NCBI GenBank assembly: GCA_002104905.1
Contig: MCFE01000371.1
Span: 21,186 to 85,185 of the forward strand
Reading direction: 5' to 3'
Length of the DNA stretch: 64,000 nucleotides
Source: Basidiobolus meristosporus CBS 931.73
Lineage: Eukaryota; Fungi; Basidiobolomycota
Each line of letters opens with the position of its first letter. Positions within the stretch are counted from its first letter, which is position 1. Both the position numbers and the translations under genes were made by a program. This document shows positions 1 to 25,228 of this stretch, one piece after another. The notes under the pieces were generated by a model. It had not been told where the DNA came from. It saw only the letters and a program-made list of their open reading frames with translations, and searched no databases.

Positions 1-42
1 CTCCGGTCCTCCTCCGCTTGCCCTCGATTCATAACACTCTCG

Positions 43-160
43 AGCATCGGCCATACATACCAGAAAATACCGGATCCCGTCCGATCTCCGAAGTCAAACT
101 GGTAATGGCCTAGTCAGTACTACGGTGGGGGACCACGTGGGAATACTAGGTGCTGATGTT
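43..160 (+). rRNA. 5S rRNA gene
   Basis: Typical 5S sequence (GGCCATAC...GATCCCGTCCGATCTCCGAAGTCAA...AGTACTACGGTGGGGGACCACGTGGGAATAC). The ends GCATCGGC/GCTGATGT pair as helix I and are followed by a T-run terminator; ~118 nt. Confidence 0.95.
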
Positions 161-354
161 TTCTTCCGAATTGCTCCACTACACAATACTCTTTTGCTTC
201 TGTTATGTGTGCGTGTGTCTGTTCTTCCTTTGCTACTGCTGTCTTTGGTATAAAAGAGTTTGCTTTCCAGATACAATGCTGCTCTCTATTCCCTAGTCAT
301 TATTGCTGAAGGGCAATTTTAGATAGTATATATAAGAAAGGGTTGTCGTATAAT

Positions 355-427
355 GCCTCCTTGGCTCAGTTGGCAGAGCGTCTGCCTAGTAAGCAGAAGG
401 TCGCTGGTTCGATTCCGGCAGAAGGCA
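355..427 (+). tRNA. tRNA-Thr(AGT)
   Basis: 73 nt cloverleaf with A box TGGCTCAGTTGG, anticodon loop CT-AGT-AA, B box GGTTCGATTCC, and downstream TTTT. Confidence 0.93.
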
Positions 428-620
428 TGTTTTACATGTTGAACCTTTTATACTTTTATACTTGTACAAGAAAATGTCTTTATTGTCTACTTCAAAGGGC
501 TGTGCTAAGCATCCAAATGTTCAAAACATTAAGTGGCCGTTGCCCATGTCATTTACTAAATCTGGCTTTGGCTCTTATGTGACTCTTGAGTAAAAGCAAG
601 CAAAATTACTCCAAAAGCAA

Positions 621-703
621 TGAAGAGAGTGGGATTCGAACCCACGCCTCCGAAGAGATCACGGCCTTAACGTGACGCCTTAGACCAACTCGGCCATCTC
701 TCC
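621..703 (-). tRNA. tRNA-Leu(AAG)
   Basis: Reverse complement GGAGAGATGGCCGAGTTGGTCTAAGGCG TCACG-TTAAGGC-CGTGA, long variable arm, GGTTCGAATCC; 83 nt. Confidence 0.95.
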
Positions 704-942
704 ATTCTTGTGGTTTGTTTACCATCGTTCTAAATGTCAATTTAACTTACCCGCCATTTAGATCAAAATCTATTGCTCGCCGTTGGTGGCTTAGTCAGGT
801 AAGTGCAATTATAGGAGCTCTCCACGTACCTGCTGTCTCATTATAGACTTTTTTTGTAACGCAGTTGATTAACAAGCTAGTAACGGTGCTATTGTACAAT
901 TTATCTCCATATTATATTTTAAATCAGGATCAAATAACAAAA

Positions 943-1027
943 CCGAACATAGCTCAGTTGGTAGAGCGGAAGACTGTAGTGTTATATAGCAATCTTTAGG
1001 TCCCTGGTTCAAATCCGGGTGTTCGGA
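943..1027 (+). tRNA. tRNA-Tyr(GTA) with 12-nt intron (~980-991)
   Basis: C1:G72 acceptor stem CCGAACA/TGTTCGG, GAAGA-CTGTAG, intron after position 37, GGTTCAAATCC. Confidence 0.93.
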
Positions 1028-1317
1028 ATTTTTGGTTTGTGCAAACCCTATTCCTACGGGTATCACTTGTGGGTAGAGCCTTGCAGCAAAGGCTCGCCTT
1101 TTTCTTGTTGGATGTGGCTCTTTACATACGATATTTGCAATACTTTATGTTATTGCTTTACCACCGTATCTGCAATGGTTTTAAGAAATATTGGCCCTTC
1201 CCATAGTGCATTGCCCTAAGTATACAATTTTTGCTTTGTTGCCCCTGAACGATTGCTTCCTTTTTGATACTTGTTGGTGGGAATACCGGTTGCCAGGGAA
1301 AACAAAATATAAAAATG

Positions 1318-1391
1318 CGCTCCTGGGTGGGCTTGAACCACCAACCTCCTGATTAACAGTCAGACGCGCTAGCCAATTGCGCCACAAGAGC
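1318..1391 (-). tRNA. tRNA-Asn(GTT)
   Basis: Reverse complement GCTCTTGTGGCGCAATTGGCTAGCGCG TCTGA-CTGTTAA-TCAGG ...GGTTCAAGCC...AGGAGCG; 74 nt. Confidence 0.94.
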
Positions 1392-1702
1392 TTCAACTGA
1401 CAAACGTTGGTTTCTCAAAATACTTGTATCAGTGTTCATCTTGGTTGATAGAAGCATTTGCATAAAACTAGCTTAGCAAGGATTCTCTGGATGGTGCACC
1501 TGCCTCCCAAAGTCAGCCATATCAGTATGTTCTATGCCGGGTGGATTCCCTAACCCGACGGTTTCCATAATTCTTTGAAGCATCACGGAAATCATCTTTT
1601 AAGCGTTTGATAACCACTGTAGAATGGCAAACTCCGACCATATAGGAAACCAACACTTGACAAAAACGACATATTCCATTAAAACTTTGTACACTCAATA
1701 AG

Positions 1703-1775
1703 GCCCGGCTAGCTCAATCGGTAGAGCGTGAGACTCTTAATCTCAAGGTTGTGGGTTCGACCCCCACGTTGGGTG
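1703..1775 (+). tRNA. tRNA-Lys(CTT)
   Basis: GCCCGGCTAGCTCAATCGGTAGAGCG TGAGA-CTCTTAA-TCTCA; 73 nt; G1:U72 pair. Confidence 0.92.
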
Positions 1776-1917
1776 ATGTATATTTTTTATTCTTTGTTTT
1801 TCACTTTCCTGGAATTGAGCAATAATTTTTGTGTTTTGAACGGTTGTCTGTATATGATATTTAAGCCGGATAGTGATATGGAAGAATGAAACAATGAATC
1901 CCAATAGAGTAATTATT

Positions 1918-1989
1918 GGACGTATAGCTCAGTGGTAGAGCAATTGACTGCAGATCAATAGGTCGGTGGTTCAAATCCGCCTGCGTCCT
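1918..1989 (+). tRNA. tRNA-Cys(GCA)
   Basis: GGACGTA/TGCGTCC acceptor stem, ATTGA-CTGCAGA-TCAAT anticodon arm, U73 discriminator; 72 nt. Confidence 0.94.
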
Positions 1990-2109
1990 CATCTTTTTTG
2001 CTAATTGAAGCGTTCATTAAAATACAATTTCGCCTAGCCACCAATTACATCTACTCACATAAATATAGCATTCAAAAGATTGATGAAATTCATTTAGAAT
2101 AATCCAAAA

Positions 2110-2182
2110 TGGAGGACCTGGGTATCGATCCCAGTGCCTCTCGCATGCTAAGCGAGCGCTCTACCATCTGAGCTAGACCCCC
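2110..2182 (-). tRNA. tRNA-Ala(AGC)
   Basis: Reverse complement GGGGGTCTAGCTCAGATGGTAGAGCG CTCGC-TTAGCAT-GCGAG ...GATCGATAC...TCCTCCA, with the G3:U70 alanine identity pair. Confidence 0.95.
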
Positions 2183-2572
2183 ATATATATACACCTCGGT
2201 GGAAAACCACTTATCTTTTTTAATTCTTCAATAGATGTACTCGCATGGCAAAGAAAATACTGGCTAGCATTGAATTGAGGACCCTGTTAACAATGGTAAT
2301 GTGTATGTCTCTTATTATCAACTTTGTGCGATCAAGGGGGCATTCATTGATGTATGACTGATGGCTATTTTGGAGCATTTTTGTTATCCACACTACAGAT
2401 GCTTTTGTTTCTTTCGGTTTGTTAATAGAAATCTCTCTGTGGCTACGCTATTAAGAGCTTCTGCCGTTTTCCCATATATAGCGCAATCTAGAAGTACACT
2501 AAATGTGAAAAGTAATCAAGCCTAACAGATCAGATTTCCGTATTTTCTAAGACGGTTGTTTGCACTGGTACT

Positions 2573-2644
2573 GGCTCAATGGTTTAGTGGTATAATTCTC
2601 CCTTAGGGTGGGAGAGGTCCTGGGTTCAATTCCCAGTTGAGCCC
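2573..2644 (+). tRNA. tRNA-Pro(AGG)
   Basis: GGCTCAA/TTGAGCC acceptor stem, CTCCC-TTAGGGT-GGGAG anticodon arm; 72 nt. Confidence 0.94.
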
Positions 2645-2679
2645 TTCTTTTGTTTGTTTTCCTGTCAAAATGGATTGTT

Positions 2680-4475
2680 AGTAAGAATGGGGTACTCTGA
2701 GCTGCAGCAGCAATTAATGTTGTGGATTCCCCTTGGTAATTCTTGATTGACAAGTAATGTAAAAATGCAATTTTTCCATCACAACAGAGCCCATCCTCCA
2801 AAGTTAAGCATCTGTTGTGGGCACATATCTTGAGTTTTCAGCTGTAACTTTTGTTCCAAGTCTGCCAAAATAATACTACAGTTTGTCCAAGTGTCTATAA
2901 CAACCAGATATTGCTTCTTGTTGATACTTATAAGTATTTGTGCTACCTGAATATCCTCTTGTGGTTGTTCCTCAGCCTTTTCTTGTATATTATTCATATG
3001 TTGCTCCATGTGGTTTAACTCTTGCTTCAACATAGGCTACTTTAAAAGACTTCAAATTGGAACAGGGATTTCCTGATTCCTTATTTGGTTTGCAACTTGG
3101 GTGACATCCATTAGTGTTGTTATGCCAGATGGTTTTATTGTTCCCCCTCCAGTTTCTATTATCATGCATTCCATTTTTGGGGATTCATCCTTTGTATCCA
3201 TTGACTTTTTTCTAACATATATATAGAATCTGTCATGTCTTCTACTATGTTGACTTTGGAATGGCTCCTATATTTGCCTTCCTCTTGCAAGGTATTTCCT
3301 TCTCTTTGTGTATTTGCTACTACAGTTGGTACTAACTTGAAATAAGGACAATTCCTCAAGATATGTCTGGGTTCTCCACAACCAAAGCATCTTTGTTCCC
3401 TTCTTGGAGGGTTGTGGTTTGAACTGGGGATAGAACTAGAATTTGTCTTCTGACTGGCTAACAAATTAAGTTCCATTCAATCAAATTTAGCTGCCAGTTT
3501 ATCCAGTTGACTATCCCATGATGTTGTTGGTGGAGTTAATAATAGTGCATGTGTTTTCTCATTGATATTCTCCCTTGTAGGGCCTCCTAGACATTGTTCC
3601 TCCTCCTCAGCAAAAGCAATTGCTTCACCCAGAGTTGTGGGTCTACATTTTCTGACCTCCATCTGGATCTCAGAGTGAAGAACATTGAGAAACTTTGATC
3701 TTATCTTCCTCCAGTGAGTATCCCAACCTTGCAAATAATCTTAATACTTATGTGGCAATTTCTGCTACTGATTCATCTTTCTGTCATAAATTCATCAGGT
3801 TTGACACCATGCATCCATTTGTGCCATTGTGACATATTTTTCCTTGAATCTTTGCTTAATGGTTTCCCAATCTGTCAAAAGCCCTTCACTTTCTTCTTAC
3901 CTAGTAGCTGCTAGTTCCTTCATGTAAGCACCTGCAATTGTTGGAAGATCTGCTAGATCCCATCAATTTGCCTTTTGACTTACTTCACATTCCTGTAGCC
4001 AAGCAATAGGATATTTGGTCTGATATCCCAAGAAATTGCTAATTGTGACCAGTCTTTGTTCCCATTGTAGCATGGACATCTTCTGTTCTTTTTGTAAGAG
4101 ATAGATTCCTTTTGTTTAATACTACCCCCTGCTGTGAGCACTAATTCTGTTATGTACTTAAAGAGTAATGTCCTTTAGAGAGTACAAAAAGGGATAATAT
4201 GTATGTTATCTTGTAGATTTGACAGGGTAGTGTAAGAATATCTCTTTAAAAGGTTAGGGTGTTGACCTTGTAGAAATATATTTAAGCTAGTTTTTGCTCC
4301 CACTATGCTTTTCTGCCTATAACCAAAAACTCCCTTTTTACTTAGTTGCTTGTTTGATATTTATACCTTACTGTGAGTCTGGTGATTTGTCTTTGATTTG
4401 CTTTTCCCTGACTACTAAGTTGTCTTTGTATGTGTTGATGTCACTTAACATCAAGTGACTCTTTACTCTGTAACA
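2680..4475 (-). mobile_element. 3'-truncated degenerate Ty3/Gypsy element (putative 5' LTR 4148-4475, gag, protease)
   Basis: Broken ORFs contain a CCHC knuckle (CFGCGEPRHILRNC), gag-like EVRKCRPTTLGEAIAFAEEEE and protease-like YLVVIDTW. Inverted termini TGTTA (4148) and TAACA (4475). Related copy at ~8330-9200. Confidence 0.8.
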
Positions 4476-4485
4476 ACTCAATAAG

Positions 4486-4558
4486 GCCTGGCTAGCTCAA
4501 TTGGTAGAGCATGAGACTCTTAATCTTAAGGTTGTGGGTTTGACCCCCACATTGGGTG
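4486..4558 (+). pseudogene. tRNA-Lys(CTT) pseudogene
   Basis: Copy of 1703-1775 with B box TTCGA changed to TTTGA and other CpG transitions. Confidence 0.9.
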
Positions 4559-4700
4559 ATGTATATTTTTTATTCTTTGTTTTTAACTTTCCTGGAATTG
4601 AGCAATAATATTTGTGTTTTGAATGGTTGTCTGTATATGATATTTAAGCCAGATAGTGATATGGAAGAATGAAACAACAAATCCCAATAGAGTAATTATT

Positions 4701-4738
4701 GGACATATAGCTCAGTGGGTCAAATCCACCTGCATCCT
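4701..4738 (+). pseudogene. tRNA-Cys pseudogene with 34-nt internal deletion
   Basis: GGACATATAGCTCAGTGG joined to GTCAAATCCACCTGCATCCT; anticodon arm lost between GTGG microhomologies. Confidence 0.9.
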
Positions 4739-4858
4739 CATTTTTTTTGCTAATTGAAGCATTCATTAAAATACAATTTTGCCTAGCCACTAATTGCATC
4801 TACTCACATAAATATAGCATTCAAAAGATTGATGAAACTCATTTAGAATAATCCAAAA

Positions 4859-4931
4859 TGGAGGGCCGGAGTATTGATCCCAGTGCCTCTTGCATGCTAA
4901 GCAAGCACTCTACCATCTGAGCTGGACACCC
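4859..4931 (-). pseudogene. tRNA-Ala(AGC) pseudogene
   Basis: Copy of 2110-2182 with CpG transitions and stem-breaking changes. Confidence 0.9.
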
Positions 4932-4941
4932 ATATATATAC

Positions 4942-5176
4942 TGTTGAAGTATGTACTACCAAGGGTGTTAACCAGAGATTGGTGTTCAAAGGTTGAGGCT
5001 GGAAGGAAAGACTGCTTTATTTTCTAACATGTTTTGCTAATTTATACTTTGGTGAACTACATTTGCTATATGCATGTCTTAGCCATTTTGCCTAATTTTG
5101 GTAATACTCAATGGATGGTTCAGGGGTAGGTCTCCAGTTGTGATGGTTTGAAGATGCTGATGACCTTACCACAACA
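4942..5176. mobile_element. 235-bp solo-LTR-like insertion
   Basis: TGTTG...CAACA termini; absent from the intact copy at 2192; flanked by ATAC/ATGC (4-bp TSD with one mismatch). Confidence 0.75.
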
Positions 5177-5254
5177 ATGCACCTTGGTTGAAAACCACTT
5201 ATCTTTTTTAATTCTTCAAATTTTGTTGCCCATGTCATTTACTAAATTTGGCAA

Positions 5255-5480
5255 CTTTGTAAGTATTACACTGAAATCTGTAAAGTTGAGGTGATAGAAG
5301 TTTGTCAATTGCAGTTGGTGTGCACATATACAGAGGCTAATAGACTTGTTTGATTGTACCATGCCATGGTGTGTAGCATAGAGTTTGGTTGTTTAGAACA
5401 ATTGGGTGTAATATTGTAGCTACCAGTAGGCAGGATTGCTCTTGGACCATTTTCATTTTATGGGACAATATTGCACACTA
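5255..5480 (+). mobile_element. Fragment of a repeated gag-knuckle/protease-like retroelement family
   Basis: Shares the AAAGTTGAGGTGATAGA...TGCAG motif with 34340-34760 (-), 45850-46260 (+) and 47100-47520 (+). Confidence 0.55.
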
Positions 5481-6238
5481 TGGTACAATCTGACATTATT
5501 GATTTTTTGTACCTTTGATTTGTATTTCAAGGATCATGGCTTAAATGCTTTTTGAAATAACTATAAGATGTTTGTAACTTTCTTGTAATAAAATGCTTTT
5601 TTAAATTTTTTCAAAATTAGAAACTATTGATTTAAAAGCATTTGGCACTTACTTCAAAATCTTTAGAATCTTGTGTGCAGCAATAATAATCTGATAGTAC
5701 AGAATTTTCTTAGATGACCACTTTTATTTTTTAGAGCAAATATATATCTAGATGATAATATCTTAATTTTGAAAGAAATTTCCAACACCTACTTTGATGT
5801 TGGTTAAGACTTTTTTATGTAGCCATTTTTGGGTTAAGCCAGACTTTTCCAGCTGCTAAATATTTAACCTAGTTTGAATGAAGCTTTTTCCCAATAATAA
5901 ACTTTTGATTTCAACAAAAGCTATTTCCAAGATGTAAAATTCTCTTAAGCTCTTTTAGTTTTCACCAAAAATACTTTTAAGATGTGAGAAGTCTCTAGAC
6001 AACAAGCTGTGTCACATGTATAGTGAATATTTTCAGTATGATAAGAGTTTTTTAAATCTAACCAAAAATATTTCCAAGATGCTAAAAGTTTTGAGATGAC
6101 AAGCTTGGGCTAAGATCAAGCAAGTATTTAAAGTATTGACCAATGCAGATATATCATACAAAAAAGTATTTGGATAAAAAAATGATTGACATAAAGTTTG
6201 TAAAAAAGAATTTTTGGTCCAACAACTAACCTTTGATT

Positions 6239-6587
6239 TGTTGTAAAAATTCGTATTTCCACCTAAATAGTCACCTAACTTAGTCACTTAGATCATCACC
6301 TTCAAATCCTAGAGAATACTGACCAAATTCCTTGTCGGGATTTACTTAGAATATTTTCACCAAAATACCAGGTACCCAGAGCATCAAAATTCTCAAAGTT
6401 GGCCAAACAGCCCCAAACTTTGCACACATGTTCTTGGGACCTTCCTTAACCTATTCTACGTGTTTGTAATGCCAAGATCAGGTAAAAGTATAAATACTAC
6501 TTTTACATTCAATAAATCATTAAGTGAAAACCACATAATCTACTTGTTCTCCAAATCACTTCCAATATCTCCAAGACTCTTACAACA
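6239..6587 (+). mobile_element. Copia solo LTR (349 bp), TSD TGATT
   Basis: TGTTGTAA...TTACAACA termini; near-identical to the LTR at 35327-35675; TGATT on both flanks. Confidence 0.95.
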
Positions 6588-7399
6588 TGATTCACCACCC
6601 TTACATATATAAGCCATTACATTCTTGTTTGTACTATAGGTCTTGCTTTTTTCATGCTACAATTATCTTCTCACAACTTCACCCAATTAGTTAACTTATC
6701 CTTTTTAGAAACCCCACACTGAAAACACCAATGATACAAGAAGCATATGACTGGGCAGAACTACTACCTGGACACTTGGAATCAAGAATTTTTTCTCCAC
6801 AGACTATACTAGAAATCCAAAGAAAAGTGACAGAAAACAGCAGATAACCCACTGAAGACCATGAGGTAGTCTACAAGGTAGTAGAGTAATATATATATCC
6901 CACAGACAAGTTTATTTATATAGTTGTTATAGTTCATTTGTCAGTATTTATCTTATCAGTATTATCTCATTCTGCTTTGCCCATATTATCAGTATTATCC
7001 CTATATGATATTCACCATGATGTGTTGTTGGCATTAGTTATCCCAACTGTTATTCAGCTTTGTGATCTGCAGATGTATTTACATTAGGCAGGTATCCATA
7101 TCAGTACCCACAACATATGATCTATATCTGTATAACCATCTCTAGCATTGAGAACTATATATGGTTTATCTATGCCATAGGTGATTCAAACTACTGATCC
7201 CTGATTATTTGGATGTATTGTGCCTTTTAGTACCTTCTAGAACCTTCTCAAAGTATTTTGAGCTCAAAGTGATGTCATCATAAGTATAAATGATGCCTGA
7301 AATCTTCTATAACCTTGTCATTAGTAATTACTTGGCCATCTGGAAATGTATTTAAGGGAAGTCAATATCCCATCAATAAATCATCTCTCTATCAGTGAC

Positions 7400-8320
7400 A
7401 GTGGCCCCTCATTGATTAGTAGCTAATCACTGCACCAATCTTCAGCAATTACACCTTGCACTATGCATAAAGGAGCTTCTCACAGTAGTGCACAAGACAC
7501 ACAGAGGTCTTTGGAGACACTTGGAGCACCTAGGATGCCAGAGAAGCTGGTGCTTTTACCAGAGTGACATATTGACAGAGACACTGCAGTTTAGACCCAG
7601 ATATTATTGCCCCCATCAGACACCTCACACCCTGTGAGTTGTGTACCTTCTCCCACATGTACCTCTACACCACCACAACAAGAAAGCTAGTGCAGGAAAT
7701 GTATCATATGTACCATTTGTCATGAGAGCAGACTTGATAGCCAAGTACCAACATGGATTTGGACATCTGGGGTCAAGGGACCACACAAATAGTATCTAGA
7801 AATGTTTAGTGACCCAGAATGTCAGAAGACATAAAGCACCTTGCCCATAGTGGCCAAGAGTGCCAGCTCACCCAAAATGCTCAGCTGAACAACTTGCAAA
7901 TGTACCCTATACCACCTGACAAACCATTTCACAGATGGCCACTTGACTTCATTAGGATTTTGCCCAAAACAAGTTCTAGAAAGTAGTATGTCCTGGTGAG
8001 GATTGTTTGTTGTACTAAATGGCAGTTTCAAGAGCACTCAAAGAAGCAAGCCAAAACAAAATAGCCTGGCTCATATATGAGGAAATAGTGATGCAGTATG
8101 GAGGCCCAGCCAAGATTTTGACAGACAGAGGTGCCAATTTCATTGCAAAATATTCTGGGACACCACTAGGAGTTACTGAACATCACTACCTCCAGACTTT
8201 GGCCTACCATCTACAGACTAATGGAGTCATAGAGATACTCAATGGACTCTTTGGAAGAATGCCAACTAAACACTGTAAAGGAGCTATACATAAATGGGAT
8301 CTACTACTGCAGAATTAGTT
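7400..8320 (+). mobile_element. Degenerate Ty3/Gypsy pol remnant (integrase core)
   Basis: ORF 8019-8318 YEEIVMQYGGPAKILTDRGANF...YHLQTNGVIEILN resembles the rve core; upstream frames are broken. Confidence 0.8.
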
Positions 8321-8329
8321 GACATAAAG

Positions 8330-9200
8330 AAAAAACTGTAAATATATTTACATGATGCATTTTCTTACTCACATGTCCCTTGCCTGACCTCCTATATATG
8401 GCTCCATCTCCTTGGTAAAAGCTTTTGCTTCACACAGAGCTGTGGGTTTACATTTTCTGGCCTCCAATTAGGCCCTATGTAGAATAGTATCAAGAACTCT
8501 TAGATCCTATCTTTATCCAAAGAGCTTGAAATCTTGAGAGCAGTATCAATACTTCTGTGATAGTTTCTGCTATTGATTCATCATTGTCTAATAAATCCCT
8601 CACATTTGCCACCATGCATCAGTTCTTGCCATTGTAGCATATATTTCTTTCAATCATTGCTAAAAGGCTCCCATTGTGTTAAAGGTTTTTTGTTTTCTTT
8701 GTACCAAGAAGCTGTCAGATCCTTTATATAAGCACTTGATATCACTGAATGATCCCATCAATTTGCCTTTTGACTGACTTCACATTCCCATAGCCAAGCA
8801 ATAAGATCTGTGGTCTGGTAATCCAAGAAATCACTGATTGTGACCAATCTTTGTTCCTGTTATAGTATGATAATCACCTGTTTGTCTTTTAAGAGATGGA
8901 ATCTTTTTGCTTAGTATTACCCCTGCTTTGAGTACCAGTTCTGTTTCATGCTTACAGAGCATTATCCTTTAGGGAATATGGAAGTAAATAGTGGGAATGT
9001 GTCATGTAGATTTGACAGGGTTATGTAAGAATATCTCTTAAAAGACCAGGATGGTGAATTGTAGATTTCTTTCAAGGTAGTAGTCTCTTGTACTGTTCTT
9101 CCTACTTTGAACCAAACATGTTGTTCATTTGATTGTTTGATTGGTATTTATACCTTATTTTATGTCTAATGATTTGTCTCTATTAATTGAGCCAGCTGGA
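8330..9200 (-). mobile_element. Degenerate Gypsy gag/LTR remnant, same family as 2680-4475
   Basis: Shared blocks such as GATCCCATCAATTTGCCTTTTGACT and GTAGATTTGACAGGGT...TAAGAATATCTCT. Confidence 0.75.
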
Positions 9201-9663
9201 ATTCTCTAAGCTGTGTAGACAATGATAGTGAGTGAGTCAAATCAATATTTATGTGTGACCACAAAAAATGCATCAATTAGCAATGTTGGTCTCTGCTTTG
9301 ATATATTCAAAACAAATGCAAGAAGGATATTGGGCAGTAGCTGATAAGCTTTGTGAGGATCTAGGTGATCAGGGTAATGCAAGTTTTTAGATGCAAATAC
9401 CATGTTAACAGCATTATCCAAGAGTAACTGAGATGTCTTGAAGCTAGATTCACTTTGTGTAATACTCACTACTTTGCTGTGTTTCAGTTGAGCATGATAA
9501 TGGGAGCTTGCAGGTGACTTGCTGTACAAAAAAAAGCTTGTGGTTTGGCTCATAGCTTTATTGAGTTGAGATGATAGTTTTTAATGTTGGTATGTACTTT
9601 GTAAAAACAGATGGGAATGCCAAAAAGTTTATTCATTTTAGCAACTCCAAGAAGTTTGGTAAC

Positions 9664-9995
9664 TGTTGTAAAAGTTTGTAATTCCACCTAAATATTCACC
9701 TGACTTAGTCACTTAGATCATTACCTTCAAATCTCAGAGAATACTGACCAAAATCCTTGTTGGGATTTACTTAGAATAGTTACCCAGAACATGAAAATTA
9801 GATAAGTTGTTCAAACAGCCCCAAACTTTGCACACATGTTCTTGGGACCTTCCTAAACCTATTCTACATGTTTGTTATGCCAGGACCATGTAAAAGTATA
9901 AATACTACTTTTACATTCAATAAGTCATTAAGTGAAAACCACATAATCTACTTGTTCTCCCAATCACTTCCAATATCTCCAAGACTCTTACAACA
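9664..9995 (+). mobile_element. Copia solo LTR (332 bp, small internal deletion), TSD GTAAC
   Basis: Same LTR family as 6239; GTAAC on both flanks. Confidence 0.95.
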
Positions 9996-10192
9996 GTAAC
10001 TACCAATATTTTCACTATTCATAGTAATTATGTTGCAAGGAATTTACCAATTCTAAGTAAACATTGATGGCACAGCTAAGAGAATGCCATATCTCCTCAA
10101 TTAAAAGTAAATTTATTTGTATAGAATAGCAAATCATACATACTTCGAGCCTATGTTCAAAAGGAAGGATGTAAGCATTGGAGGAAGGGGGT

Positions 10193-16126: not shown

Positions 16127-18770
16127 ATGTCCGCTGCAGCCTTATCTAAATCTGCTGATGGGTCCACCTTCTATAGTGATTGTCGCAAGGTCTTGCGTCG
16201 TCTACAGCAAATACCTTCACTTTCAAGCTTCATAGATTCACAAAAGGTTGTGTGCTCAGCCACTGATTCATATTGCCCTTTTCCTTCTGGGACGAACCCA
16301 ATCACAACCTTGTGGAACACCTTCCGTCTGGGTTCCAGTTTGTGCGCTCTGTTCAATGCCACTGAACCAGAAACTTTACTAGAGGTGGATGAGAGCATCA
16401 CCATAGACAATCTCAAGGCCTGTAAGCATAGCGTGTATCACTTTCTGTTGGGTTGTAAAAACCAACTAGGGTTGAAAGACGATGCGCTCTTTACCATCAC
16501 CGAATTATACCAAGACGACACCAACAAGTTTCTAAAGGTAAGACACTAGACGTTTCGCTAGTCAAAGAAAGGACGCTAAAAACGAGGTCTAGGTGCTGCA
16601 TACGGTCGAAATACTACTTCAACTGATGGTCCACAAAAGATTGATTGCGGAGGTCGATCCGTCTTCCGAGGATGACCTTGCACCGGCAGGGGTTGGGGGG
16701 AGCCTGGCACCAGACCCACTTTCAAGCACCGCACAAGAACGACTACGTAAGCAGACGGTGAAAGAATTGCTAATAACGGAAAGGAAATACGTCCAAGACT
16801 TGGAGACGCTTCAGGTGAGTCTGCACGGTAATTCTTGCAGCAATATGACTGCCCAGCTCACACTGGCACCCATAGGAATATATGCAGGAGCTTCAGTTGC
16901 ACAAGGTGGTCTCCAACGATGTGCTTCGAAATCTATTTGCCAACCTGGATGGACTGGTGGATTTTCAACGACGCTTCCTTATCGGCGTAGAGGCGAACGC
17001 GGAATTACCGCCCACAGAGCAGCGATTTGGCGCACTCTTCATTCAAATGGTAATCCACAGGGATGCTCGTTCGCAGTAAGCGCCCGCCTAATTGTGCCAC
17101 TCATCTAGGAAACTAGCTTCACTGTGTACGAGCCGTTCTGCGCCAATTACCTGCATGCATCGGAGATAGTGCTTGCCGAAGCGCCCAATCTCATGGTTAG
17201 TCCTTGTCCACCATCCGTCACGAGAGCCTTGATTAACACAATCCTCGCAGAAACTAGCGCATGTGGTCGAGCCCACCTACGGGCTCCCGTCGTTGCTCAT
17301 CAAGCCCATTCAGAGAGTGTGCAAGTATCCGCTGTTGCTCATGGTATGTGGATAGACAGCAGTCAGCAGAAGCCGTAGTAACCCCTCTCCGTCTTCACAA
17401 CAGCAATTGGGGAAATTGATGTCGCCGGACGAGCCATTCCACCAGGAACTTCTGGATGGTTTGGAGGCGATCAAACGAGTCACTGATCGAGTGAACGAAA
17501 CCCAGCGAAAAGAAGAGAACCTGATCGAGTTGAAGAAGCTGGAGAAGATGATCGAAAACTGGAACGGCCCCTCGTTGTCATACTTTGGTGAGCTGCACCT
17601 GTTCGACAAGTTGCTGGTCAGCGTGAACGATGTCGAGCGTGAGTGCTGGCTCTATTTGTTCGACAAGGCGCTTCTAGTGTGCAAAGAAACCGCTGCTAGC
17701 CGGAAGGCTAACAAAAGCACCAACGGCAAGAAGCCGCTTGCCCTCCACAACAAGGCCACTCTACTCATCCGAGAGATCCGGACTGTCGTGCCTACCGCGC
17801 GAAATGGTTAGTTGCTTCCAGGCGGTCGCCGGTCCAGAAACTTACCTACTTTTCCCTAGGCACCTACTCCATCAAGGTTGACTGGCTGAATTCGGAGACG
17901 ATCATTAGCCCAGCAAATGAAGAGCATTTCAAGCTGTGGACCTCCACCATCGAGAAGGTCCGTGACATCTACAAGATATCCCGGCTGAACAAACAGTCTG
18001 CCATGAAGCTATCCCGCACACAAACCAACACCTCGGATATTCTGACTCAAGAGGCCAATTGGAATTCGGATGACGACGCGGTCTCCTTCATCGACCAGCA
18101 AGTGGACAACGATGACGACGATGTTTCGTCCGGCATCAGAAGCTTCTCTGCTAGAAGCTCCTTCGGGTCACTGGGTAGAAGCAGAAGTCGAAGTCAATCC
18201 ACTCCATCACACGCCCCCTTAGAGGGCGGTGAGTACCCTCCATTGTCATTCCCACCACTGCCCAAGCCGGAAGCGTCGTTTGCAACGCAGCATCCCGGCC
18301 ATGTGAGCGCGCCAGCACCCAAGCCCTTCCCCCAGCAGGCCTTCGAGCAATCCCACGGACCGGTGGGGGAGCAATTTCGCCAGCTCCATTTGGACGGAGA
18401 ATACCACGGCATGGACAGGACCTATCGTCTCATTGACCAAGCGTACAGGCAAAAGAGAAGCGCCTCCAGCCCGAACATCCATGGCCACTCGACGAACATC
18501 CGCGTTCGAATCAACTACCACGAGGACTCGTTCATGCTTGTGGTGCCGTCGGGGGTCACGTTCCACGATCTCGTGAAGAAGGTCGAGAAGAAGATCCACC
18601 TGTGCTCGGGGGCGAAGCTGGAGAGCAAGTTCAGGATCAAGTACAAGGACGAAGAGGACGACCTGATTCTGATCAACAACGACGAGGATGTACAGATGGC
18701 ATTCGAAAGCCGCCACAGCCAGGAGGCCAGACCCGAGTTGGCCATGGTCGTCAACATTTACGTGAGTTGA
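16127..18770 (+). CDS. CDC24: Cdc24/Scd1-like Rho GEF (CH, DH, PH, PB1), multi-exon
   Basis: PITTLWNTFRLGSSLCALFN (CDC24 CH domain), ELLITERKYVQDLE and LLIKPIQRVCKYPLLL (DH), C-terminal PB1 IKYKDEEDDLILINNDEDV; GT-AG introns join in frame. Confidence 0.93.
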
Positions 18771-19548: not shown

Positions 19549-22500
19549 ATGTCGCCATCGAACAAAAAATATAGTAAACCCTCCTTCTATCGGCATATTC
19601 GGGGTAACGGGGAAGCCACCGAGAGTGGCCCTAAATATGCCAGCTCCACCACCACCTATTCTGATCCCTTCTCTGATTCACAACAAGGTACCGACTACTC
19701 CTCCCAAACTGACACCAGTTACAACCCATGGGATACGTCCAAGAAGGACTTATTCTTCGAGCCCAGCGCCAATGAAAAGTGCTATTTCTCACAACCAGAG
19801 GCTGGTTCTCTTCGGAAAAACTCGAAAAATTCCATCGAGCTATCGCGCGAGCTATCGCACGGCAAGAAGTTCCCCAAGGCCTCCAAGGCCCGTAGATACT
19901 GGCTCCTCGTCTCGAAGATCTTCACCATCTTTATCCCGGACTTTCTGCTAAAGTCGTGCGGAAAGAAGGACCCAGGTACAGTTTGACATGGCTCCGCTCG
20001 CATCCCATTGGCATCCCTTACTAACCCCCGCCCAACCCTGACTCTAGACTCGCGGCAGTCATTGCGAGAGAAAATCACCCTGTTTCTCATCCTCTCGCTC
20101 CTCTCGTTACTGTTCATCGTGTGGGTGGAGCTCATCCCGCTGACGTTCTGCACCCCCTACTACCTCTTCACCCCGGGCGACCTTGCTGGCACCAGCTACG
20201 TGGCAATCAACGGCAAGGTTGTGGACTTCTCCCATTCGACCACCGTCGTGGCGGAGGAGGTGGGGCGGTACTCGGGGAAGGATGTTTCTCTCATGTTTCC
20301 CTCGTTCACCCTGCTGGCCCGGACCAAAGGAGCTACCGAGTACCCAGATCAAGATATCCAACGGTGCATCCAGAATCTCACCCGGGCAGACAATTGGCTG
20401 GAGAAGCGGATCTTCAACGATCCCGGATACCTGGTGACGAACCAGAAGCTGATCGAGTGTCCGAGCCCCAACGATCGAAACAAATCATCTGCCCACTGCT
20501 TCTACAACGCATCGGTTCGCCACGAGGTGGCCAAGGCGACTGTCGGAGGTAAGTTCAGATGTGTGCCAATCCCCAGTCCATTGCTGACCCCAGGCAGACC
20601 TTGTTTTCGATTACTCCATCCTAGGAAGAAATGAGCCTAATCTGCCGCAATTGGCGTACATGATTGCGAATGGCCATCTGTATGATATGTCTGACTTCAT
20701 CAAATATTCCTCGGCCCCCGCCTCGCCAATCAGGCCGTGGAGCCCCAAGGGCCTCGATCCAGAATCCCTGCTTTTCCCCCGCGAGGTCACCGAGCTTATC
20801 TTCGAGTATGTTGGGGAGGATGCCACGGGGCCCTTCAGTCGACTGGAGCACGGAGACACGTACCTGCGATGCATGGACAAGCTGTTCTACAAGGGCGCGG
20901 TCAAGGAGACGGTTCTGCCGCAGTGCCGGTCATTCAACCCCATCCTCTGGATAACGTTCGGGCTTCCGTTCATGTTCCTGACCATCTGTACGGTGGCCTC
21001 CCTGCTTGTGTTCCCCGACAGAAGCAAGATCCAGCCGTCGTCGAACTGCATCGTGATGGTGCCCTGCTACTGCGAAGATCAGCAGACGCTCAAATCCAAT
21101 TTCGACAGCGTGGCCCGATCCGACTGCCACGACAGCCACAAGCTGCTGATGGTCATCTGCGATGGGATATTTACTGCGCCCGGCAACGTCATGAGCACGC
21201 ACCAGATTGTACTGGACATCCTGGGGTTCAGCGGACCCGAGCCCGAGCTGAAGGCGTACATTTCCTTGGGCGAGGGGAACAAGAACATCAATCTGGCCAA
21301 AGTTTATTCCGGATTTTATGAATGTGGAACGCACCGGATCGGCTACGTGGTGGTTGTCAAGTACGGGAACCCGATGGAGATTCGCAATTCAGGGAACCGA
21401 GGGAAACGGGACTCCATCCTTGTGATGTGGAACTTCCTGGAGGGCCTGCTGGATCCCGAGAACAAGCTGACCCCCTTGGAGTACGAGCTATTCCATCACA
21501 TCAACAACGTCATTGGGATCGACCCCCGCTCCTTCCAATACGCCCTGGTGCTGGATGCCGACACGAGCATCGCCGGAGACGCGCTTTCCCGCCTGATCGC
21601 GAGGATGGAGAGGGACCAGAGACTGATGGCCGTCTCGGGCTACGCAAAGCCGCTAAACCCCACCGACTCCTTCGTCACCATGCTGCAGGCGTATCCCTTC
21701 TTCATGAGCCACTACATCAAGCCGGTGTTCGAGTCCATGATCGGTGGGGTGACCTTCCTGCACGGCCCCTGCACGATGTACAGAATCAAGTACTCTGACA
21801 GCAAGCCGTGTGTGGTGGACACCACCACCATCATTGGGTTCAGCACACCGCGGCCGAACACGATGCACATGCGCAACACCCTTCTTTTGGGAGAGGACTC
21901 CTTCTTCTCGGTCATTCTGTTGAAAACGTTCCCCCACCTGCGATTCGGATTCGAGAGCTCGGCGATCTGCTACACCCGGCTCACCCCGAGGTTCGCCGTC
22001 TTTCTCGGCCAGCAAGGAAGAATCACGAGCGCCGCCTTCCATAGCTACTTCGAGCTTGCCAGGGTTTACGGGAAAACCTCGCTGGGCTTGATCTACCAGC
22101 TTGTCACCATGATCAAGCTTCTCAGCTCCACGTTCATGCCGGTGTTCGTGCTTTATTTGTATTACGTGATCATTCGCAGCATCGCGACCGACGAGACCGC
22201 GTATCTCATCGTGGGCACCTCGTTGATATGCATGTTTGGCTTCAACGCCATGATCCTCGCGGTCCGCGGGCAGTTTGCTGGCGTCTTCTGGCTGGTCTTC
22301 TCCGTCCTGTTCTCCCTTCCCTTCTACTGCCTGCTGATCCCGCTGTATTCGCTGTGGCACAGCGACAACTGCTTGTGGGTGGACACGGTTCAGACAAACT
22401 CAAAGTCCATCCGCCGTAAGCATGGTATCCTGGACGACACCAATAGCCAGTACAAGGTCAGCATGCAGATATCCCTGCTGACCATCGCTGAATATGATGA

Positions 22501-23242
22501 GCTGGAGAACGACGACGAATCCTTGTACGAGGACATCCGCTACGAGAAGCCGCAGCGGTTGATCTCGCTGGGCGACACGAGCCCCGCCCCTTCCGTGGAG
22601 CTGCAGTCCGATCGGCCTGAGGACATGGTTCATCTAGCGAAGCATGTGGATCAAAGGGCCGAAGAGATTCTCATCAGCATACCCCAGGTGGTGCAACCCA
22701 TACAAATCAAAACGAAGAAAGACCATCATCTAAGCAGCGGCTCCAACAAGAACCTGGATAGCGATGTGCCCCTCTCCCTGAGCTGCTCCCCAAAGTCCCC
22801 AGGTCGCCTCTCCCAGGCCACAGCCAACTCGACGCTGCAGTCCGAATACAGCACTGACTACACAAGATCCTCCCGAACCTTCTCCTACTACTCGCATCAA
22901 CTGGATGCCGCTACGAACGACATGGAGTCCCAACCGAGGTCACGCCCCGAAAGCGATCGTAGCTCCAGCAGAGACCACTCCCATCTTCTCAACGGGACCA
23001 CCGCTGGCTCGAAGGGTGCACTGGTGCAACGGCTGATGCGGGAGGAGATCTATTATTTCCTGAAGGAAGCCAACCTCAACACGGTGACGAGGAGAGACGT
23101 GAAAGAGCGGCTTTTTGAGCATTTCGGGGACGCAGTGACCATTTACAACGACTTCATACACGATTGCATCGAGGAGTTCACCTTGGAGAGACTGGCGTTG
23201 CTGCCGTCAGCCACCTCGCCGCAATCGCCCTCCACTCCTTGA
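19549..23242 (+). CDS. Division-2 (class V/VII-like) chitin-synthase-like protein with cytochrome-b5-like and DEK_C domains; catalytic motifs degenerate
   Basis: Three exons join in frame (KDPDSRQSLREKI; GDLVFDYS). Motifs GNRGKRDS, LDADT and LGEDS are present, QQGRI stands where QRRRW is expected, and the C-terminus is DEK_C-like EEIYYFLKEANLNTVTRRDVKERL. No myosin motor domain. Confidence 0.88.
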
Positions 23243-23755
23243 TATACCTTTACTTATTCCCGCCCGATAGACCGAACCCCCGCGGAGACCAACGCCAAGT
23301 CGGAAGCATAGAACCCATTGAATGTTTTTGTAATGTATACCGCAAGCTACTTTATTACGAAGAACCTCCCCCCGGCTCTGTACTTCTAGGACATGTAAAT
23401 ACCCTCTTTATCCCACTAGAAGCGTAACTTCACTCAGTAAAAACGGCCCCTTTTCTTATTCATTATCATGCATAACTTCTACGAGACTTTTCACACCCCT
23501 TCCACCATTTACGTTATCTGACTCAGTTTTTAAACCAAAATAAACGCCCATTCTGCTCGAATTGCTCGACCCGCTGGCATCCAACGAATTTGTGGGTGGC
23601 CGGATCCGTGGGAATGTGGGAAATGAGGGGATTTATCGGATGGAGTTTTACGTCAACAGGCCAGGATGTTCGCCTGTATCCCTTGTTTCACTGACATATA
23701 CGATCCCTTCTTTTCATTCCCCTGGCTTGGAAACCCGAGAAAGATTCCTATTTCG

Positions 23756-25228
23756 ATGGCCTCTCTTCTGAAGAGCTTCTTTCACACCAGCGCCACTTCT
23801 TCCTACATAGCCCCCCTCACCCAGACCATGTCCAAAACCGCCGTTGCCCACGCCAATGACTTCCTCGAGTTCGTCAACAGCAGTCCCAGCCCCTTCCACG
23901 CGGTTGAGGAGAGCAGGAAGCGACTCGAGAAGGTCGGCTTCGTGGAGATCAAAGAGCGGGACAGTTGGTCCGAGCTAGTCAAGCCCAACGGCAAGTACTA
24001 CTTCACCAGAAACAAGTCCTCCATCATAGCGTTCGCCGTGGGCGGCAAGTTTGTCCAAGGCAACGGGGTTTCCATCGTGGCCGCCCACACCGACAGCCCC
24101 TGCTTGAAGATCAAGCCCATCTCGAAGAAGGAGAAATCCGGCTACCTCCAGGTCGGGGTCCAGACCTACGGCGGCGGCCTGTGGCACACTTGGTTCGACA
24201 GAGACCTGAGCATCGCCGGCAGAGTCATGGTTGAAAGCGAGGACGGAAACCACTACTCCAAGCTGGTGCGTGTTGACAAGCCTATCCTCCGGGTCCCCAA
24301 CCTGGCCATTCACTTGGACCGCACCTCCGGAGACAACTTCACCTTCAACAAAGAGACCCATCTGACCCCCGTGTTGGCCACCTCCGCGAAGGCCTTGAAC
24401 GAAAAGGCCCAGGAGAGCCAGAGCCAATCGTCGGAGGGGGTGGAGAAGCACCACTCCGTGCTGGTCGACCTGCTCGCCAGCGAGCTCTCCATCGCCGGGG
24501 AGAAAATCAAGGATCTCGAGTTGTGCCTATACGACACCCAGCCCTCGGCCATCGGCGGAGCCCTCGATGAGTTCATCTTCTCTCCACGACTCGACAACCT
24601 GATGATGTCCCACTGCTCGGTCAGTGCGCTCATCAATTCCCTGGAGCACGGGAGCACCCTGGTTGACGACAGCTGCATCCGTATGGTGGCGCTCTTTGAC
24701 AACGAGGAGATTGGCTCGCAGTCGGCGTACGGAGCCGACTCCCACCTGCTGGAGGCCACGTTGCGCAGACTCCAAGCGGGAACCAACCCCACCGCCTTCG
24801 AGGAGTCCATCCACAAGAGCTTCTTGGTCAGCGCCGACATGGCCCACGCGGTCCACCCCAATTACCCCGAGAAGCACGAGGAGAACCACCGACCAGCCAT
24901 GCACAAGGGACTCGTGATCAAGGTCAACGCCAACCAAAGGTATGCCACCACCGCCGCCACCTCCCTCGAAATCAAGGCCCTGGCCAAGAAGCATGGCATC
25001 CCCCTGCAGGAGTTCGTGGTGCGTAACGACATGGGCTGTGGATCCACCATCGGGCCCATCCTCAGCGCCAAACTGGGGATGCGCACCATCGACGTGGGGG
25101 CGCCCCAGCTGAGCATGCACAGCATCCGCGAGATGTGCGGCACCGAGGATGTGAAGAACTCGATCCAGCTGTTCGAGGCGTTCTTCCAAGAATACGCCCA
25201 CTTGGATCAGAAGATCTTCGTCGATTAA
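23756..25228 (+). CDS. APE4: Aspartyl aminopeptidase (peptidase M18), intronless
   Basis: SPSPFHAV, AAHTDSPCLK, YGGGLWHTWFDRDL, RLDNL, DNEEIGS, SADMAHAVHPNY, LSMHSIRE. First plausible ATG at 23756, second at 23828. Confidence 0.95.
   Translation: MASLLKSFFHTSATSSYIAPLTQTMSKTAVAHANDFLEFVNSSPSPFHAVEESRKRLEKVGFVEIKERDSWSELVKPNGKYYFTRNKSSIIAFAVGGKFVQGNGVSIVAAHTDSPCLKIKPISKKEKSGYLQVGVQTYGGGLWHTWFDRDLSIAGRVMVESEDGNHYSKLVRVDKPILRVPNLAIHLDRTSGDNFTFNKETHLTPVLATSAKALNEKAQESQSQSSEGVEKHHSVLVDLLASELSIAGEKIKDLELCLYDTQPSAIGGALDEFIFSPRLDNLMMSHCSVSALINSLEHGSTLVDDSCIRMVALFDNEEIGSQSAYGADSHLLEATLRRLQAGTNPTAFEESIHKSFLVSADMAHAVHPNYPEKHEENHRPAMHKGLVIKVNANQRYATTAATSLEIKALAKKHGIPLQEFVVRNDMGCGSTIGPILSAKLGMRTIDVGAPQLSMHSIREMCGTEDVKNSIQLFEAFFQEYAHLDQKIFVD

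Follow-up and report, generated by a model that had tools for sequence, protein, structure and literature searches.

A gene on a 64,000-nucleotide stretch of the genome of Basidiobolus meristosporus CBS 931.73 (contig MCFE01000371.1, positions 21,186 to 85,185; this whole stretch is referred to below as the window) encodes a chitin-synthase-like protein in which the QRRRW signature is replaced, and the locus raises the question of what such a protein is and where it came from. The first-pass annotation, made from the letters of the window, had suggested that it is not a case of simple decay but either a pseudoenzyme or an altered transferase, and this direction holds. The gene is a member of a known, neglected class, here first seen outside Mucoromycotina; it extends a published observation and is not new in kind. 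The sequences compared indicate that the branch without QRRRW very probably arose once, is common to Basidiobolus and Mucoromycotina, and has been selectively maintained with the synthase fold.

According to the account given in PMC5122149, a 'class VIII' of Mucoromycotina was proposed by Mélida, Sain, Stajich & Bulone (2015, Environ Microbiol 17:1649). Gonçalves et al. (2016; PMC5122149) describe class VIII as lacking QXXRW/QRRRW and set it aside, the QRRRW motif being their criterion for inclusion.

The gene had been described as open, correctly spliced and rich in GC at third codon positions (GC3), and all of this is borne out. Both introns have GT..AG borders, and scripted splicing yields a coding sequence of 3573 nt with the stop codon TGA, the translation of which is without internal stop over 1190 codons and identical to P0001, the protein from which residue numbers are taken below. 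In a protein search, the best match of the large exon is K493DRAFT_339889 with 100% identity. The GC3 of the coding sequence amounts to 0.76.

The motif letters and coordinates that had been reported (QQGRI, GEDS, QAYPF, TFLHG, GNRGKRDS, DADT) are exact to the base by translation (Table 1). Of the motifs EDR, QxxEY, (V/C)LPG(A/C) and SWG, the window protein retains only ED, the initial Q, G and W, respectively; the donor residues D498, D629, D631, E742 and D743 as well as GNRGKRDS are all present. When the roles of the motifs are taken from the structures of PsChs1, CaChs2 and ScChs1 (PMC12653383; motif roles also in PMC4734345), the loss is indeed concentrated at active-site motifs, as had been claimed: the replacements hit acceptor-side, channel-mouth and gating motifs, and those on the donor side are untouched. 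The donor diphosphate is contacted by R784, the third Arg of QRRRW (PMC12653383). In an HMMER alignment to the Xenopus hyaluronan synthase HAS1, QQGRI stands opposite QQTRW and GEDS opposite GDDR, and the motif assignment is therefore independent of the multiple alignment. All 42 canonical division-2 sequences used for the tree described below possess E676, D743, R744, R782, R783, R784 and W785, and the deviation of the motifs in the window protein is not due to chance.

The deviating motifs are found in a whole group of proteins. Among the best 120 matches, 19 lack QxxRW, Q[VIL][YF]EY and [ST]WG together (four from Basidiobolus, 14 from Mucorales and one protein from the Joint Genome Institute, JGI), whereas nearly all of the other 101 possess QRRRW and LGEDR[YF], and most of these also Q[VI][YF]EY and [ST]WG. 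A profile of the clade core was searched exhaustively, without a word index, against 1.84 billion representative proteins. It returned 19 representatives with at least 552 bits, followed by a gap; the next protein, a canonical one, scored 408 bits and carries QRRRW. QxxRW occurs in none of the 18 high scorers that were scanned (18 of 19), and the four best canonical matches (P0135-P0138) carry QRRRW. Named members belong to the Mucorales (Rhizopus, Mucor, Backusella, Lichtheimia, Phycomyces and others), to Umbelopsis, to the Endogonales (Jimgerdemannia flammicorona) and to Basidiobolus. No member was identified in Mortierellomycotina, Glomeromycotina, other Zoopagomycota, chytrids or Dikarya, with eight of the 19 high scorers not looked up by name and three nameless. 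The first-pass annotation had proposed a retained non-catalytic paralogue or an enzyme with a different product. This stands as far as the gene is intact, under strong purifying selection and not decaying; it does not stand as a peculiarity of one paralogue, since the loss is ancestral to a clade that includes proteins of Mucoromycotina. In the motif scan, one further protein, P0104 of Pisolithus tinctorius (805 aa), gave no match to Q..RW, with LGEDRY, SWG and QVYEY present; this probably reflects a gap in the gene model rather than a further loss of the motif.

For the phylogeny, 29 proteins without QRRRW and 42 canonical division-2 sequences were analysed in IQ-TREE under LG+C20+F+G4 with posterior mean site frequencies (PMSF; 71 rows, 468 columns). 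The tree comprises the closest relatives obtained from the searches, without a recognised class IV or division-1 outgroup, and no claim is made about the root of the clade within division 2. All 29 proteins without QRRRW, including the Basidiobolus gene, whose placement among division-2 chitin synthases had been suggested as a check, are set apart from the canonical sequences by a branch with 100/100 support. Within this clade, Basidiobolus is followed by Endogonales and then by Umbelopsis together with Mucorales, the last three being arranged in the order of the Mucoromycotina species tree.

Several points speak against this reading of the clade as a single, already named lineage. The two stems are long (0.91 and 0.67), and the signature residues and introns are the only arguments against an attraction of long branches. 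When either half of the clade is left out, the other half attaches alone at the same place, beside P0135 and two proteins of Blastocladiomycota, which does not by itself exclude attraction. Furthermore, the equation of the Mucoromycotina part of the clade with the class VIII of Mélida et al. is most likely correct as far as the text of Gonçalves et al. and a footnote to their Table S2 describe that class, from which it is drawn and not from accession numbers.

The signature residues are as follows. At 22 positions, a residue is fixed in all four Basidiobolus proteins, present in at least 80% of the Mucoromycotina members and found in at most 10% of the canonical proteins. Of 166 columns conserved to at least 90% among the canonical proteins, 44 are altered in both lineages, compared to about 24 expected if the changes were independent, and in 12 of these 44 both lineages have changed to the identical residue, partly by non-conservative replacements such as E676P, E658H, V729P and V816K. 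Concerning the introns, both of those in Basidiobolus match in codon and phase the only two introns of Phycomyces (at A46 and D221; L004:1637-1689 and 2215-2332) and of Jimgerdemannia (at D272 and D443; L005:1104-1438 and 1952-2068); the three-exon structure is the same as in Basidiobolus, and all of these introns are in phase 1. Independent convergent decay in two lineages is rejected by the identical non-conservative replacements, by the 22 signature residues and by the tree. A recent horizontal transfer from Mucorales is likewise rejected, as the Basidiobolus branch lies outside the Mucoromycotina members altogether, Endogonales included.

A different route to the same tree would be an ancient horizontal transfer from stem Mucoromycotina to Basidiobolus, or the reverse, in place of vertical descent. 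The patchy distribution, with named members confined to the Mucoromycotina orders and Basidiobolus (under the proviso given above for the high scorers not looked up by name), is in its favour, although the absence elsewhere is bounded by what has been sequenced. The shared introns are compatible with either route. On the other hand, Basidiobolus forms the sister group of the Mucoromycotina members as a whole, and the stems of both groups are long; any transfer would have to predate the split of Endogonales and Mucorales. We consider such a transfer possible, though not the more likely route.

The maintenance of the gene can be followed within Basidiobolus. In the independently assembled genome of B. 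ranarum, a syntenic orthologue (P0002) is 85% identical to the window protein and has the same PB1 gene upstream (contig L001). A second copy exists in both species (P0003 at L002 in B. ranarum, and L003 in B. meristosporus); at L002 (3012-5623) and L003 (6375-8342) it is followed by an M18 aminopeptidase gene and then by an LTV-domain gene, and the window copy also has an M18 gene downstream. From these M18 and LTV neighbours shared in both species it follows that the two copies stem from a segmental duplication that predates the split of B. meristosporus and B. ranarum, and both duplicates have been kept in both species since then. LGEDSF and GQQGR(I/A)TSAAFHS are found in all four Basidiobolus copies. 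An assembly error, which had been considered at the outset, is excluded by the same motifs in the independent B. ranarum assembly and in the second pair of paralogues.

In codon alignments of the large exon, the proportion of nonsynonymous differences (pN) among the four copies ranges from 0.075 to 0.149, whereas that of synonymous differences (pS) is saturated at 0.73 to 0.91; even so, pN/pS is about 0.1-0.2. Within the gene, the glycosyltransferase (GT) core is the slowest part (dN 0.046-0.12). The pN of the neighbours is 0.083-0.111 for the M18 peptidase and 0.104 for the PB1 gene, and the chitin-synthase-like gene is thus as constrained as the adjoining ordinary genes. Since pS exceeded 0.75 in most pairs, a Jukes-Cantor-corrected dS was not computable for these, and pN/pS proportions calibrated on the neighbours were used, not omega. 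Values of pS above the random expectation of 0.75 occur because of a shift in GC3 between the species, from 0.78 to 0.43-0.47 in the rate comparison. This shift concerns the same genes, with a GC3 of 0.76-0.84 in B. meristosporus and of 0.32-0.47 in B. ranarum. The view that the gene is not simply decaying is borne out by the open frame, by pN far below pS, by the slowest change in the GT core and by a pN like that of the neighbours; an orthologue with the same degenerate motifs and a dN/dS below 1, which had been suggested as a check, is found in B. ranarum, pN/pS serving as the measure.

The overall fold appears to have been retained as well. A comparison of a structure model with solved chitin synthases had been proposed, and an AlphaFold2 model of residues 440-905 (predicted local distance difference test, pLDDT, 83.9; predicted template modelling score, pTM, 0.85) matches hyaluronan synthases, Chs1, Chs2 and PsChs1 best in Foldseek (E 3e-16 to 1e-12, template modelling (TM) scores 0.5-0.64). 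With hyaluronan and chitin synthases as the best matches, the model indicates that the overall fold of a membrane synthase is retained. In a sequence search of the PDB, Xenopus HAS1 is the sole match (E 2e-4), and no structure of a division-2 chitin synthase was matched by sequence.

Which residues are kept and which are lost follows the same division throughout the clade. All 25 Mucoromycotina members possess E469, D498, D629, E742 and R784, and 24 of them possess D631; the Trp of the gating loop SWG is invariant in the clade. Position 743 is acidic in all 29 members, being Asp in Basidiobolus and either Asp (nine members) or Glu (16 members) in Mucoromycotina. Across the clade, replacements affect E and Y in QxxEY, the gate lock CLPGC, RR and W in QRRRW, and S and G in SWG. 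W785 gives way to ten residue types (nine in Mucoromycotina and Ile in Basidiobolus), and the position of the Arg of EDR is occupied by Q, K, R, L, H or S. The mean entropy within the Mucoromycotina members is 1.21 bits in the replaced columns, compared to 0.21 bits in the kept columns and 1.41 bits in ordinary variable columns. Judged by this pattern, the protein is a conserved membrane protein in which the nucleotide-sugar pocket and the metal site are intact and the catalytic centre has an acidic pair, whereas the acceptor site and channel mouth are rewritten and weakly constrained.

A protein of this kind would still bind uridine diphosphate N-acetylglucosamine (UDP-GlcNAc) at the membrane and would still carry out transfer or hydrolysis chemistry, while the end of a chitin chain would no longer be positioned in the canonical way. 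It would accordingly be a non-canonical glycosyltransferase, which might be non-processive, differently primed, or directed to another acceptor or product, rather than a standard chitin polymerase or a dead relic. For the window protein itself, we give about an even chance to such a non-canonical glycosyltransferase with retained chemistry and altered acceptor handling. Retained chemistry is favoured because the acidic base position has long been kept, E742 has never changed and 22 residues have been newly fixed; the invariant donor pocket together with the always acidic base position makes us lean slightly in this direction. Extended to the whole clade, Basidiobolus and the Mucoromycotina 'class VIII' together, the reading that all members are active membrane glycosyltransferases that kept the UDP-GlcNAc donor machinery of chitin synthases but have a different acceptor or product is put forward tentatively. 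Equally tentative are the products that could be imagined for them, e.g., a wall glycan that is not chitin or is made non-processively, a GlcNAc primer, or GlcNAc conjugated to a lipid or a protein.

Against a retained chemistry stand several observations. The catalytic Asp has become Glu in 16 of the 25 Mucoromycotina members. The replaced acceptor-side columns are nearly as variable as ordinary ones, which is the look of a functionless site; this near-variability would fit a ligand-binding pseudoenzyme as well as an enzyme that recognises its acceptor elsewhere. No biochemical, genetic or expression data were found in the literature for any member of the clade, including RO3G_08731 of Rhizopus; the fungal hyaluronan synthases described in a preprint do possess QxxRW and have no bearing on this class. 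Moreover, even conservative changes in EDR or QRRRW are said to inactivate yeast Chs2, in work by Nagahashi from 1995.

The main rival of the non-canonical glycosyltransferase is accordingly the pseudoenzyme, i.e., a protein that binds UDP-GlcNAc or UDP without transfer and acts as a regulatory or scaffolding subunit, e.g., a heterodimer partner, trafficking partner or substrate sensor for active synthases. It would account for the loss of all canonical acceptor-binding and gating residues at positions that are nearly unconstrained (1.21 compared to 1.41 bits) and for the Glu at the catalytic position mentioned above; the lost motifs are described as essential (PMC4734345, PMC12653383, PMC5122149), and solved chitin synthases are dimeric, as exemplified by the PsChs1 dimer (PMC12653383). 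A pure binder, however, needs neither a base position that is acidic in 29 of 29 members nor an invariant E742, and the 22 newly fixed clade-specific residues represent new constraints beyond loss. We regard the pseudoenzyme as possible, without preferring it.

Quite improbable, in turn, is a true processive chitin synthase that makes normal chitin in spite of its divergent motifs. In its favour are a strong Chitin_synth_2 score (376.9 bits), a predicted membrane-integrated synthase fold that includes interfacial and transmembrane helices, and the retention in Basidiobolus of the three donor-side Asp residues (D, D, D), the ED pair and R784. Yet the protein has lost residues that are invariant in the 42 canonical proteins examined (W in QxxRW, E and Y in QxxEY, CLPGC, R in EDR, S and G in SWG), these positions vary freely within the clade, and the class was excluded by Gonçalves et al. 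from the potentially functional chitin synthases (PMC5122149). A decaying pseudogene, or an artefact of assembly or annotation, for which the degenerate active-site motifs and the lack of any RNA sequencing run found to show transcription could be adduced, is effectively refuted and of negligible probability in view of the open frame of 1190 codons with canonical splice sites, the purifying selection at the level of neighbouring housekeeping genes (pN/pS about 0.1-0.2, GT core most conserved), the recurrence of the motifs in the assembly of another species and in paralogues, and the conservation of the clade across Mucoromycotina orders.

Table 1. Coordinates of the chitin-synthase-like gene, its exons, domains and motifs, and its neighbours (positions in the window).
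Feature	Position	Strand	Remarks
PB1-domain gene, upstream	18003..18770	+	synteny anchor to B. ranarum L001
Whole gene, start to stop codon	19549..23242	+	chitin-synthase-like protein, 1190 aa; K493DRAFT_339889 (P0001), Basidiobolus meristosporus CBS 931.73
Exon 1	19549..19975	+	low-complexity N-terminus and first hydrophobic segment; ends in phase 1 inside codon D143
Intron 1	19976..20047	+	GT..AG, phase 1; codon and phase as in Phycomyces and Jimgerdemannia relatives
Exon 2	20048..20548	+	membrane segment and extracytoplasmic N-terminal domain
Intron 2	20549..20597	+	GT..AG, phase 1, inside codon D310 before LVFDYS (...KATVG/DLVFDYS, slash marking the site); site and phase common to Mucoromycotina relatives
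Exon 3	20598..23242	+	b5-like stretch, GT2 (glycosyltransferase family 2) core, C-terminal membrane helices, linker, DEK_C
Cytochrome-b5-like stretch	20645..20734	+	PF00173, 22.0 bits against a cut-off of 23.7, i.e., below the Pfam threshold
Chitin_synth_2 (PF03142)	21032..22495	+	GT-A core, interfacial and transmembrane helices; 376.9 bits against a cut-off of 27
PCYCED, counterpart of donor-binding PCYTE	21062..21079	+	E469 invariant
CDG, donor-binding Asp motif	21158..21166	+	kept
GNRGKRDS	21392..21415	+	G, N, R, G, K, R, D invariant in 64/64 aligned clade and canonical sequences; S in at least 90%
DADT, DxD metal and diphosphate motif	21554..21565	+	kept
QAYPF for QVYEY, interfacial helix 1	21686..21700	+	E to P derived, also in 21/25 Mucoromycotina members
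TFLHG for TCLPG, gate-lock motif (also FLHGP against (V/C)LPG(A/C))	21752..21766	+	from translation
GEDS for GEDR	21890..21901	+	E742 and catalytic-base Asp D743 kept, Arg lost
QQGRI for QRRRW	22010..22024	+	only Q781 and diphosphate-binding R784 kept; acceptor-stacking Trp replaced by Ile
LWV for SWG, gating loop	22373..22381	+	only Trp kept
DEK_C (PF08766)	23039..23179	+	33.4 bits against a cut-off of 24.8
M18 aminopeptidase gene, downstream	23666..25228	+	synteny anchor to paralogous L002 and L003; rate calibrator

Of the three regions named in the first-pass annotation, the chitin synthase and DEK_C regions stand above their Pfam cut-offs, whereas the b5-like region is a resemblance below the threshold. 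DEK_C often accompanies division-2 chitin synthases of superclass V, in an architecture of b5-like, Chitin_synth_2 and DEK_C regions (PMC5122149), and both DEK_C and the b5-like stretch point to this type of architecture, as far as domain content can indicate it. In the Pfam scan of the protein, the myosin motor (PF00063) gave no match, and the N-terminal 310 residues match no Pfam family. The branch very probably descends from division-2 chitin synthases of this b5-like/CS2/DEK_C type that lack a myosin motor.

The paralogue of B. meristosporus at L003 (MCFE01000001.1, L003:2489-6089) is represented in the annotation by K493DRAFT_250389, labelled 'partial' (P0004, 755 aa), which is a truncated gene model. 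The locus possesses an N-terminal exon (MTSSNKKYSKPSLYRQLR...), and an uninterrupted frame of 871 codons (3477-6089) passes through the GT core and reaches a DEK_C-like C-terminus (…EEFTLEKLALLP…). Concerning the window as a whole, positions 1-10000 and 34000-64000 are AT-rich (34-42% GC) and bracket a gene island of 50-58% GC at about 10-34 kb.

Chitin synthases are prime antifungal targets, and among both Mucorales and Basidiobolus there are human pathogens in which the chitin synthase families are very large. The branch described here has been omitted from classifications for want of QRRRW, and yet it has been strongly selected since before the Mucoromycotina orders diverged; its member in Basidiobolus makes it older or more mobile than the label 'Mucoromycotina-specific' suggests. 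New here, as documented by the comparisons of sequences, are the reach of the class into Basidiobolus, its single origin, a defined residue signature and a constraint at the level of housekeeping genes. Whether the proteins represent a new glycosyltransferase activity or a regulator that binds nucleotide sugars, either answer would change how counts of chitin synthase genes in these fungi are to be read. If the tentative reading of the whole clade as active enzymes were true, a new activity would be hidden under 'chitin synthase' annotations in early-diverging fungi, including agents of mucormycosis.

Among the known systems, the solved processive synthases of family GT2 (the hyaluronan synthases of Chlorella virus and Xenopus, ScChs1, CaChs2 and PsChs1) share with the window protein the predicted GT-A core, the interfacial helices and the transmembrane bundle, whereas the identity is only 12-16% and the window protein lacks the acceptor-stacking Trp as well as the Arg after the catalytic Asp. 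Closer is the similarity to superclass V (classes V/VII, e.g., CsmA/CsmB and Mcs1, including forms without myosin), with which it has in common the succession of b5-like, Chitin_synth_2 and DEK_C regions, a core identity of around 32-37%, and identical GNRGKRDS, DADT and CDG motifs. It differs from superclass V in that QVYEY, CLPGC, EDR, QRRRW and SWG are all altered, in the gap in profile score to the canonical proteins, and in the lack of a myosin motor, which is frequent in superclass V, not universal.

The protein is most similar to class VIII, which, as far as it is described in the published account, likewise comprises chitin-synthase-like GT2 proteins without QRRRW and other catalytic motifs. 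There are, nevertheless, differences between the two: Class VIII was published as restricted to Mucoromycotina, whereas the host of the window gene is Basidiobolus (Zoopagomycota/Entomophthoromycotina), with an orthologue in B. ranarum. In the Mucoromycotina members (P0005-P0015, P0086), the gate-lock and ED motifs are separated by an insertion of around 100-200 residues with a high content of Ser, Asp and Asn (alignment columns about 955-1095), which is absent from the Basidiobolus proteins and from canonical synthases, and many of these members also have long C-terminal linkers rich in homopolymers; the catalytic base of the Basidiobolus proteins is Asp, not Glu. Despite these differences, the Basidiobolus and Mucoromycotina proteins form one clade with 100/100 support and have in common the 22 signature residues, the 12 identical replacements and both intron sites.

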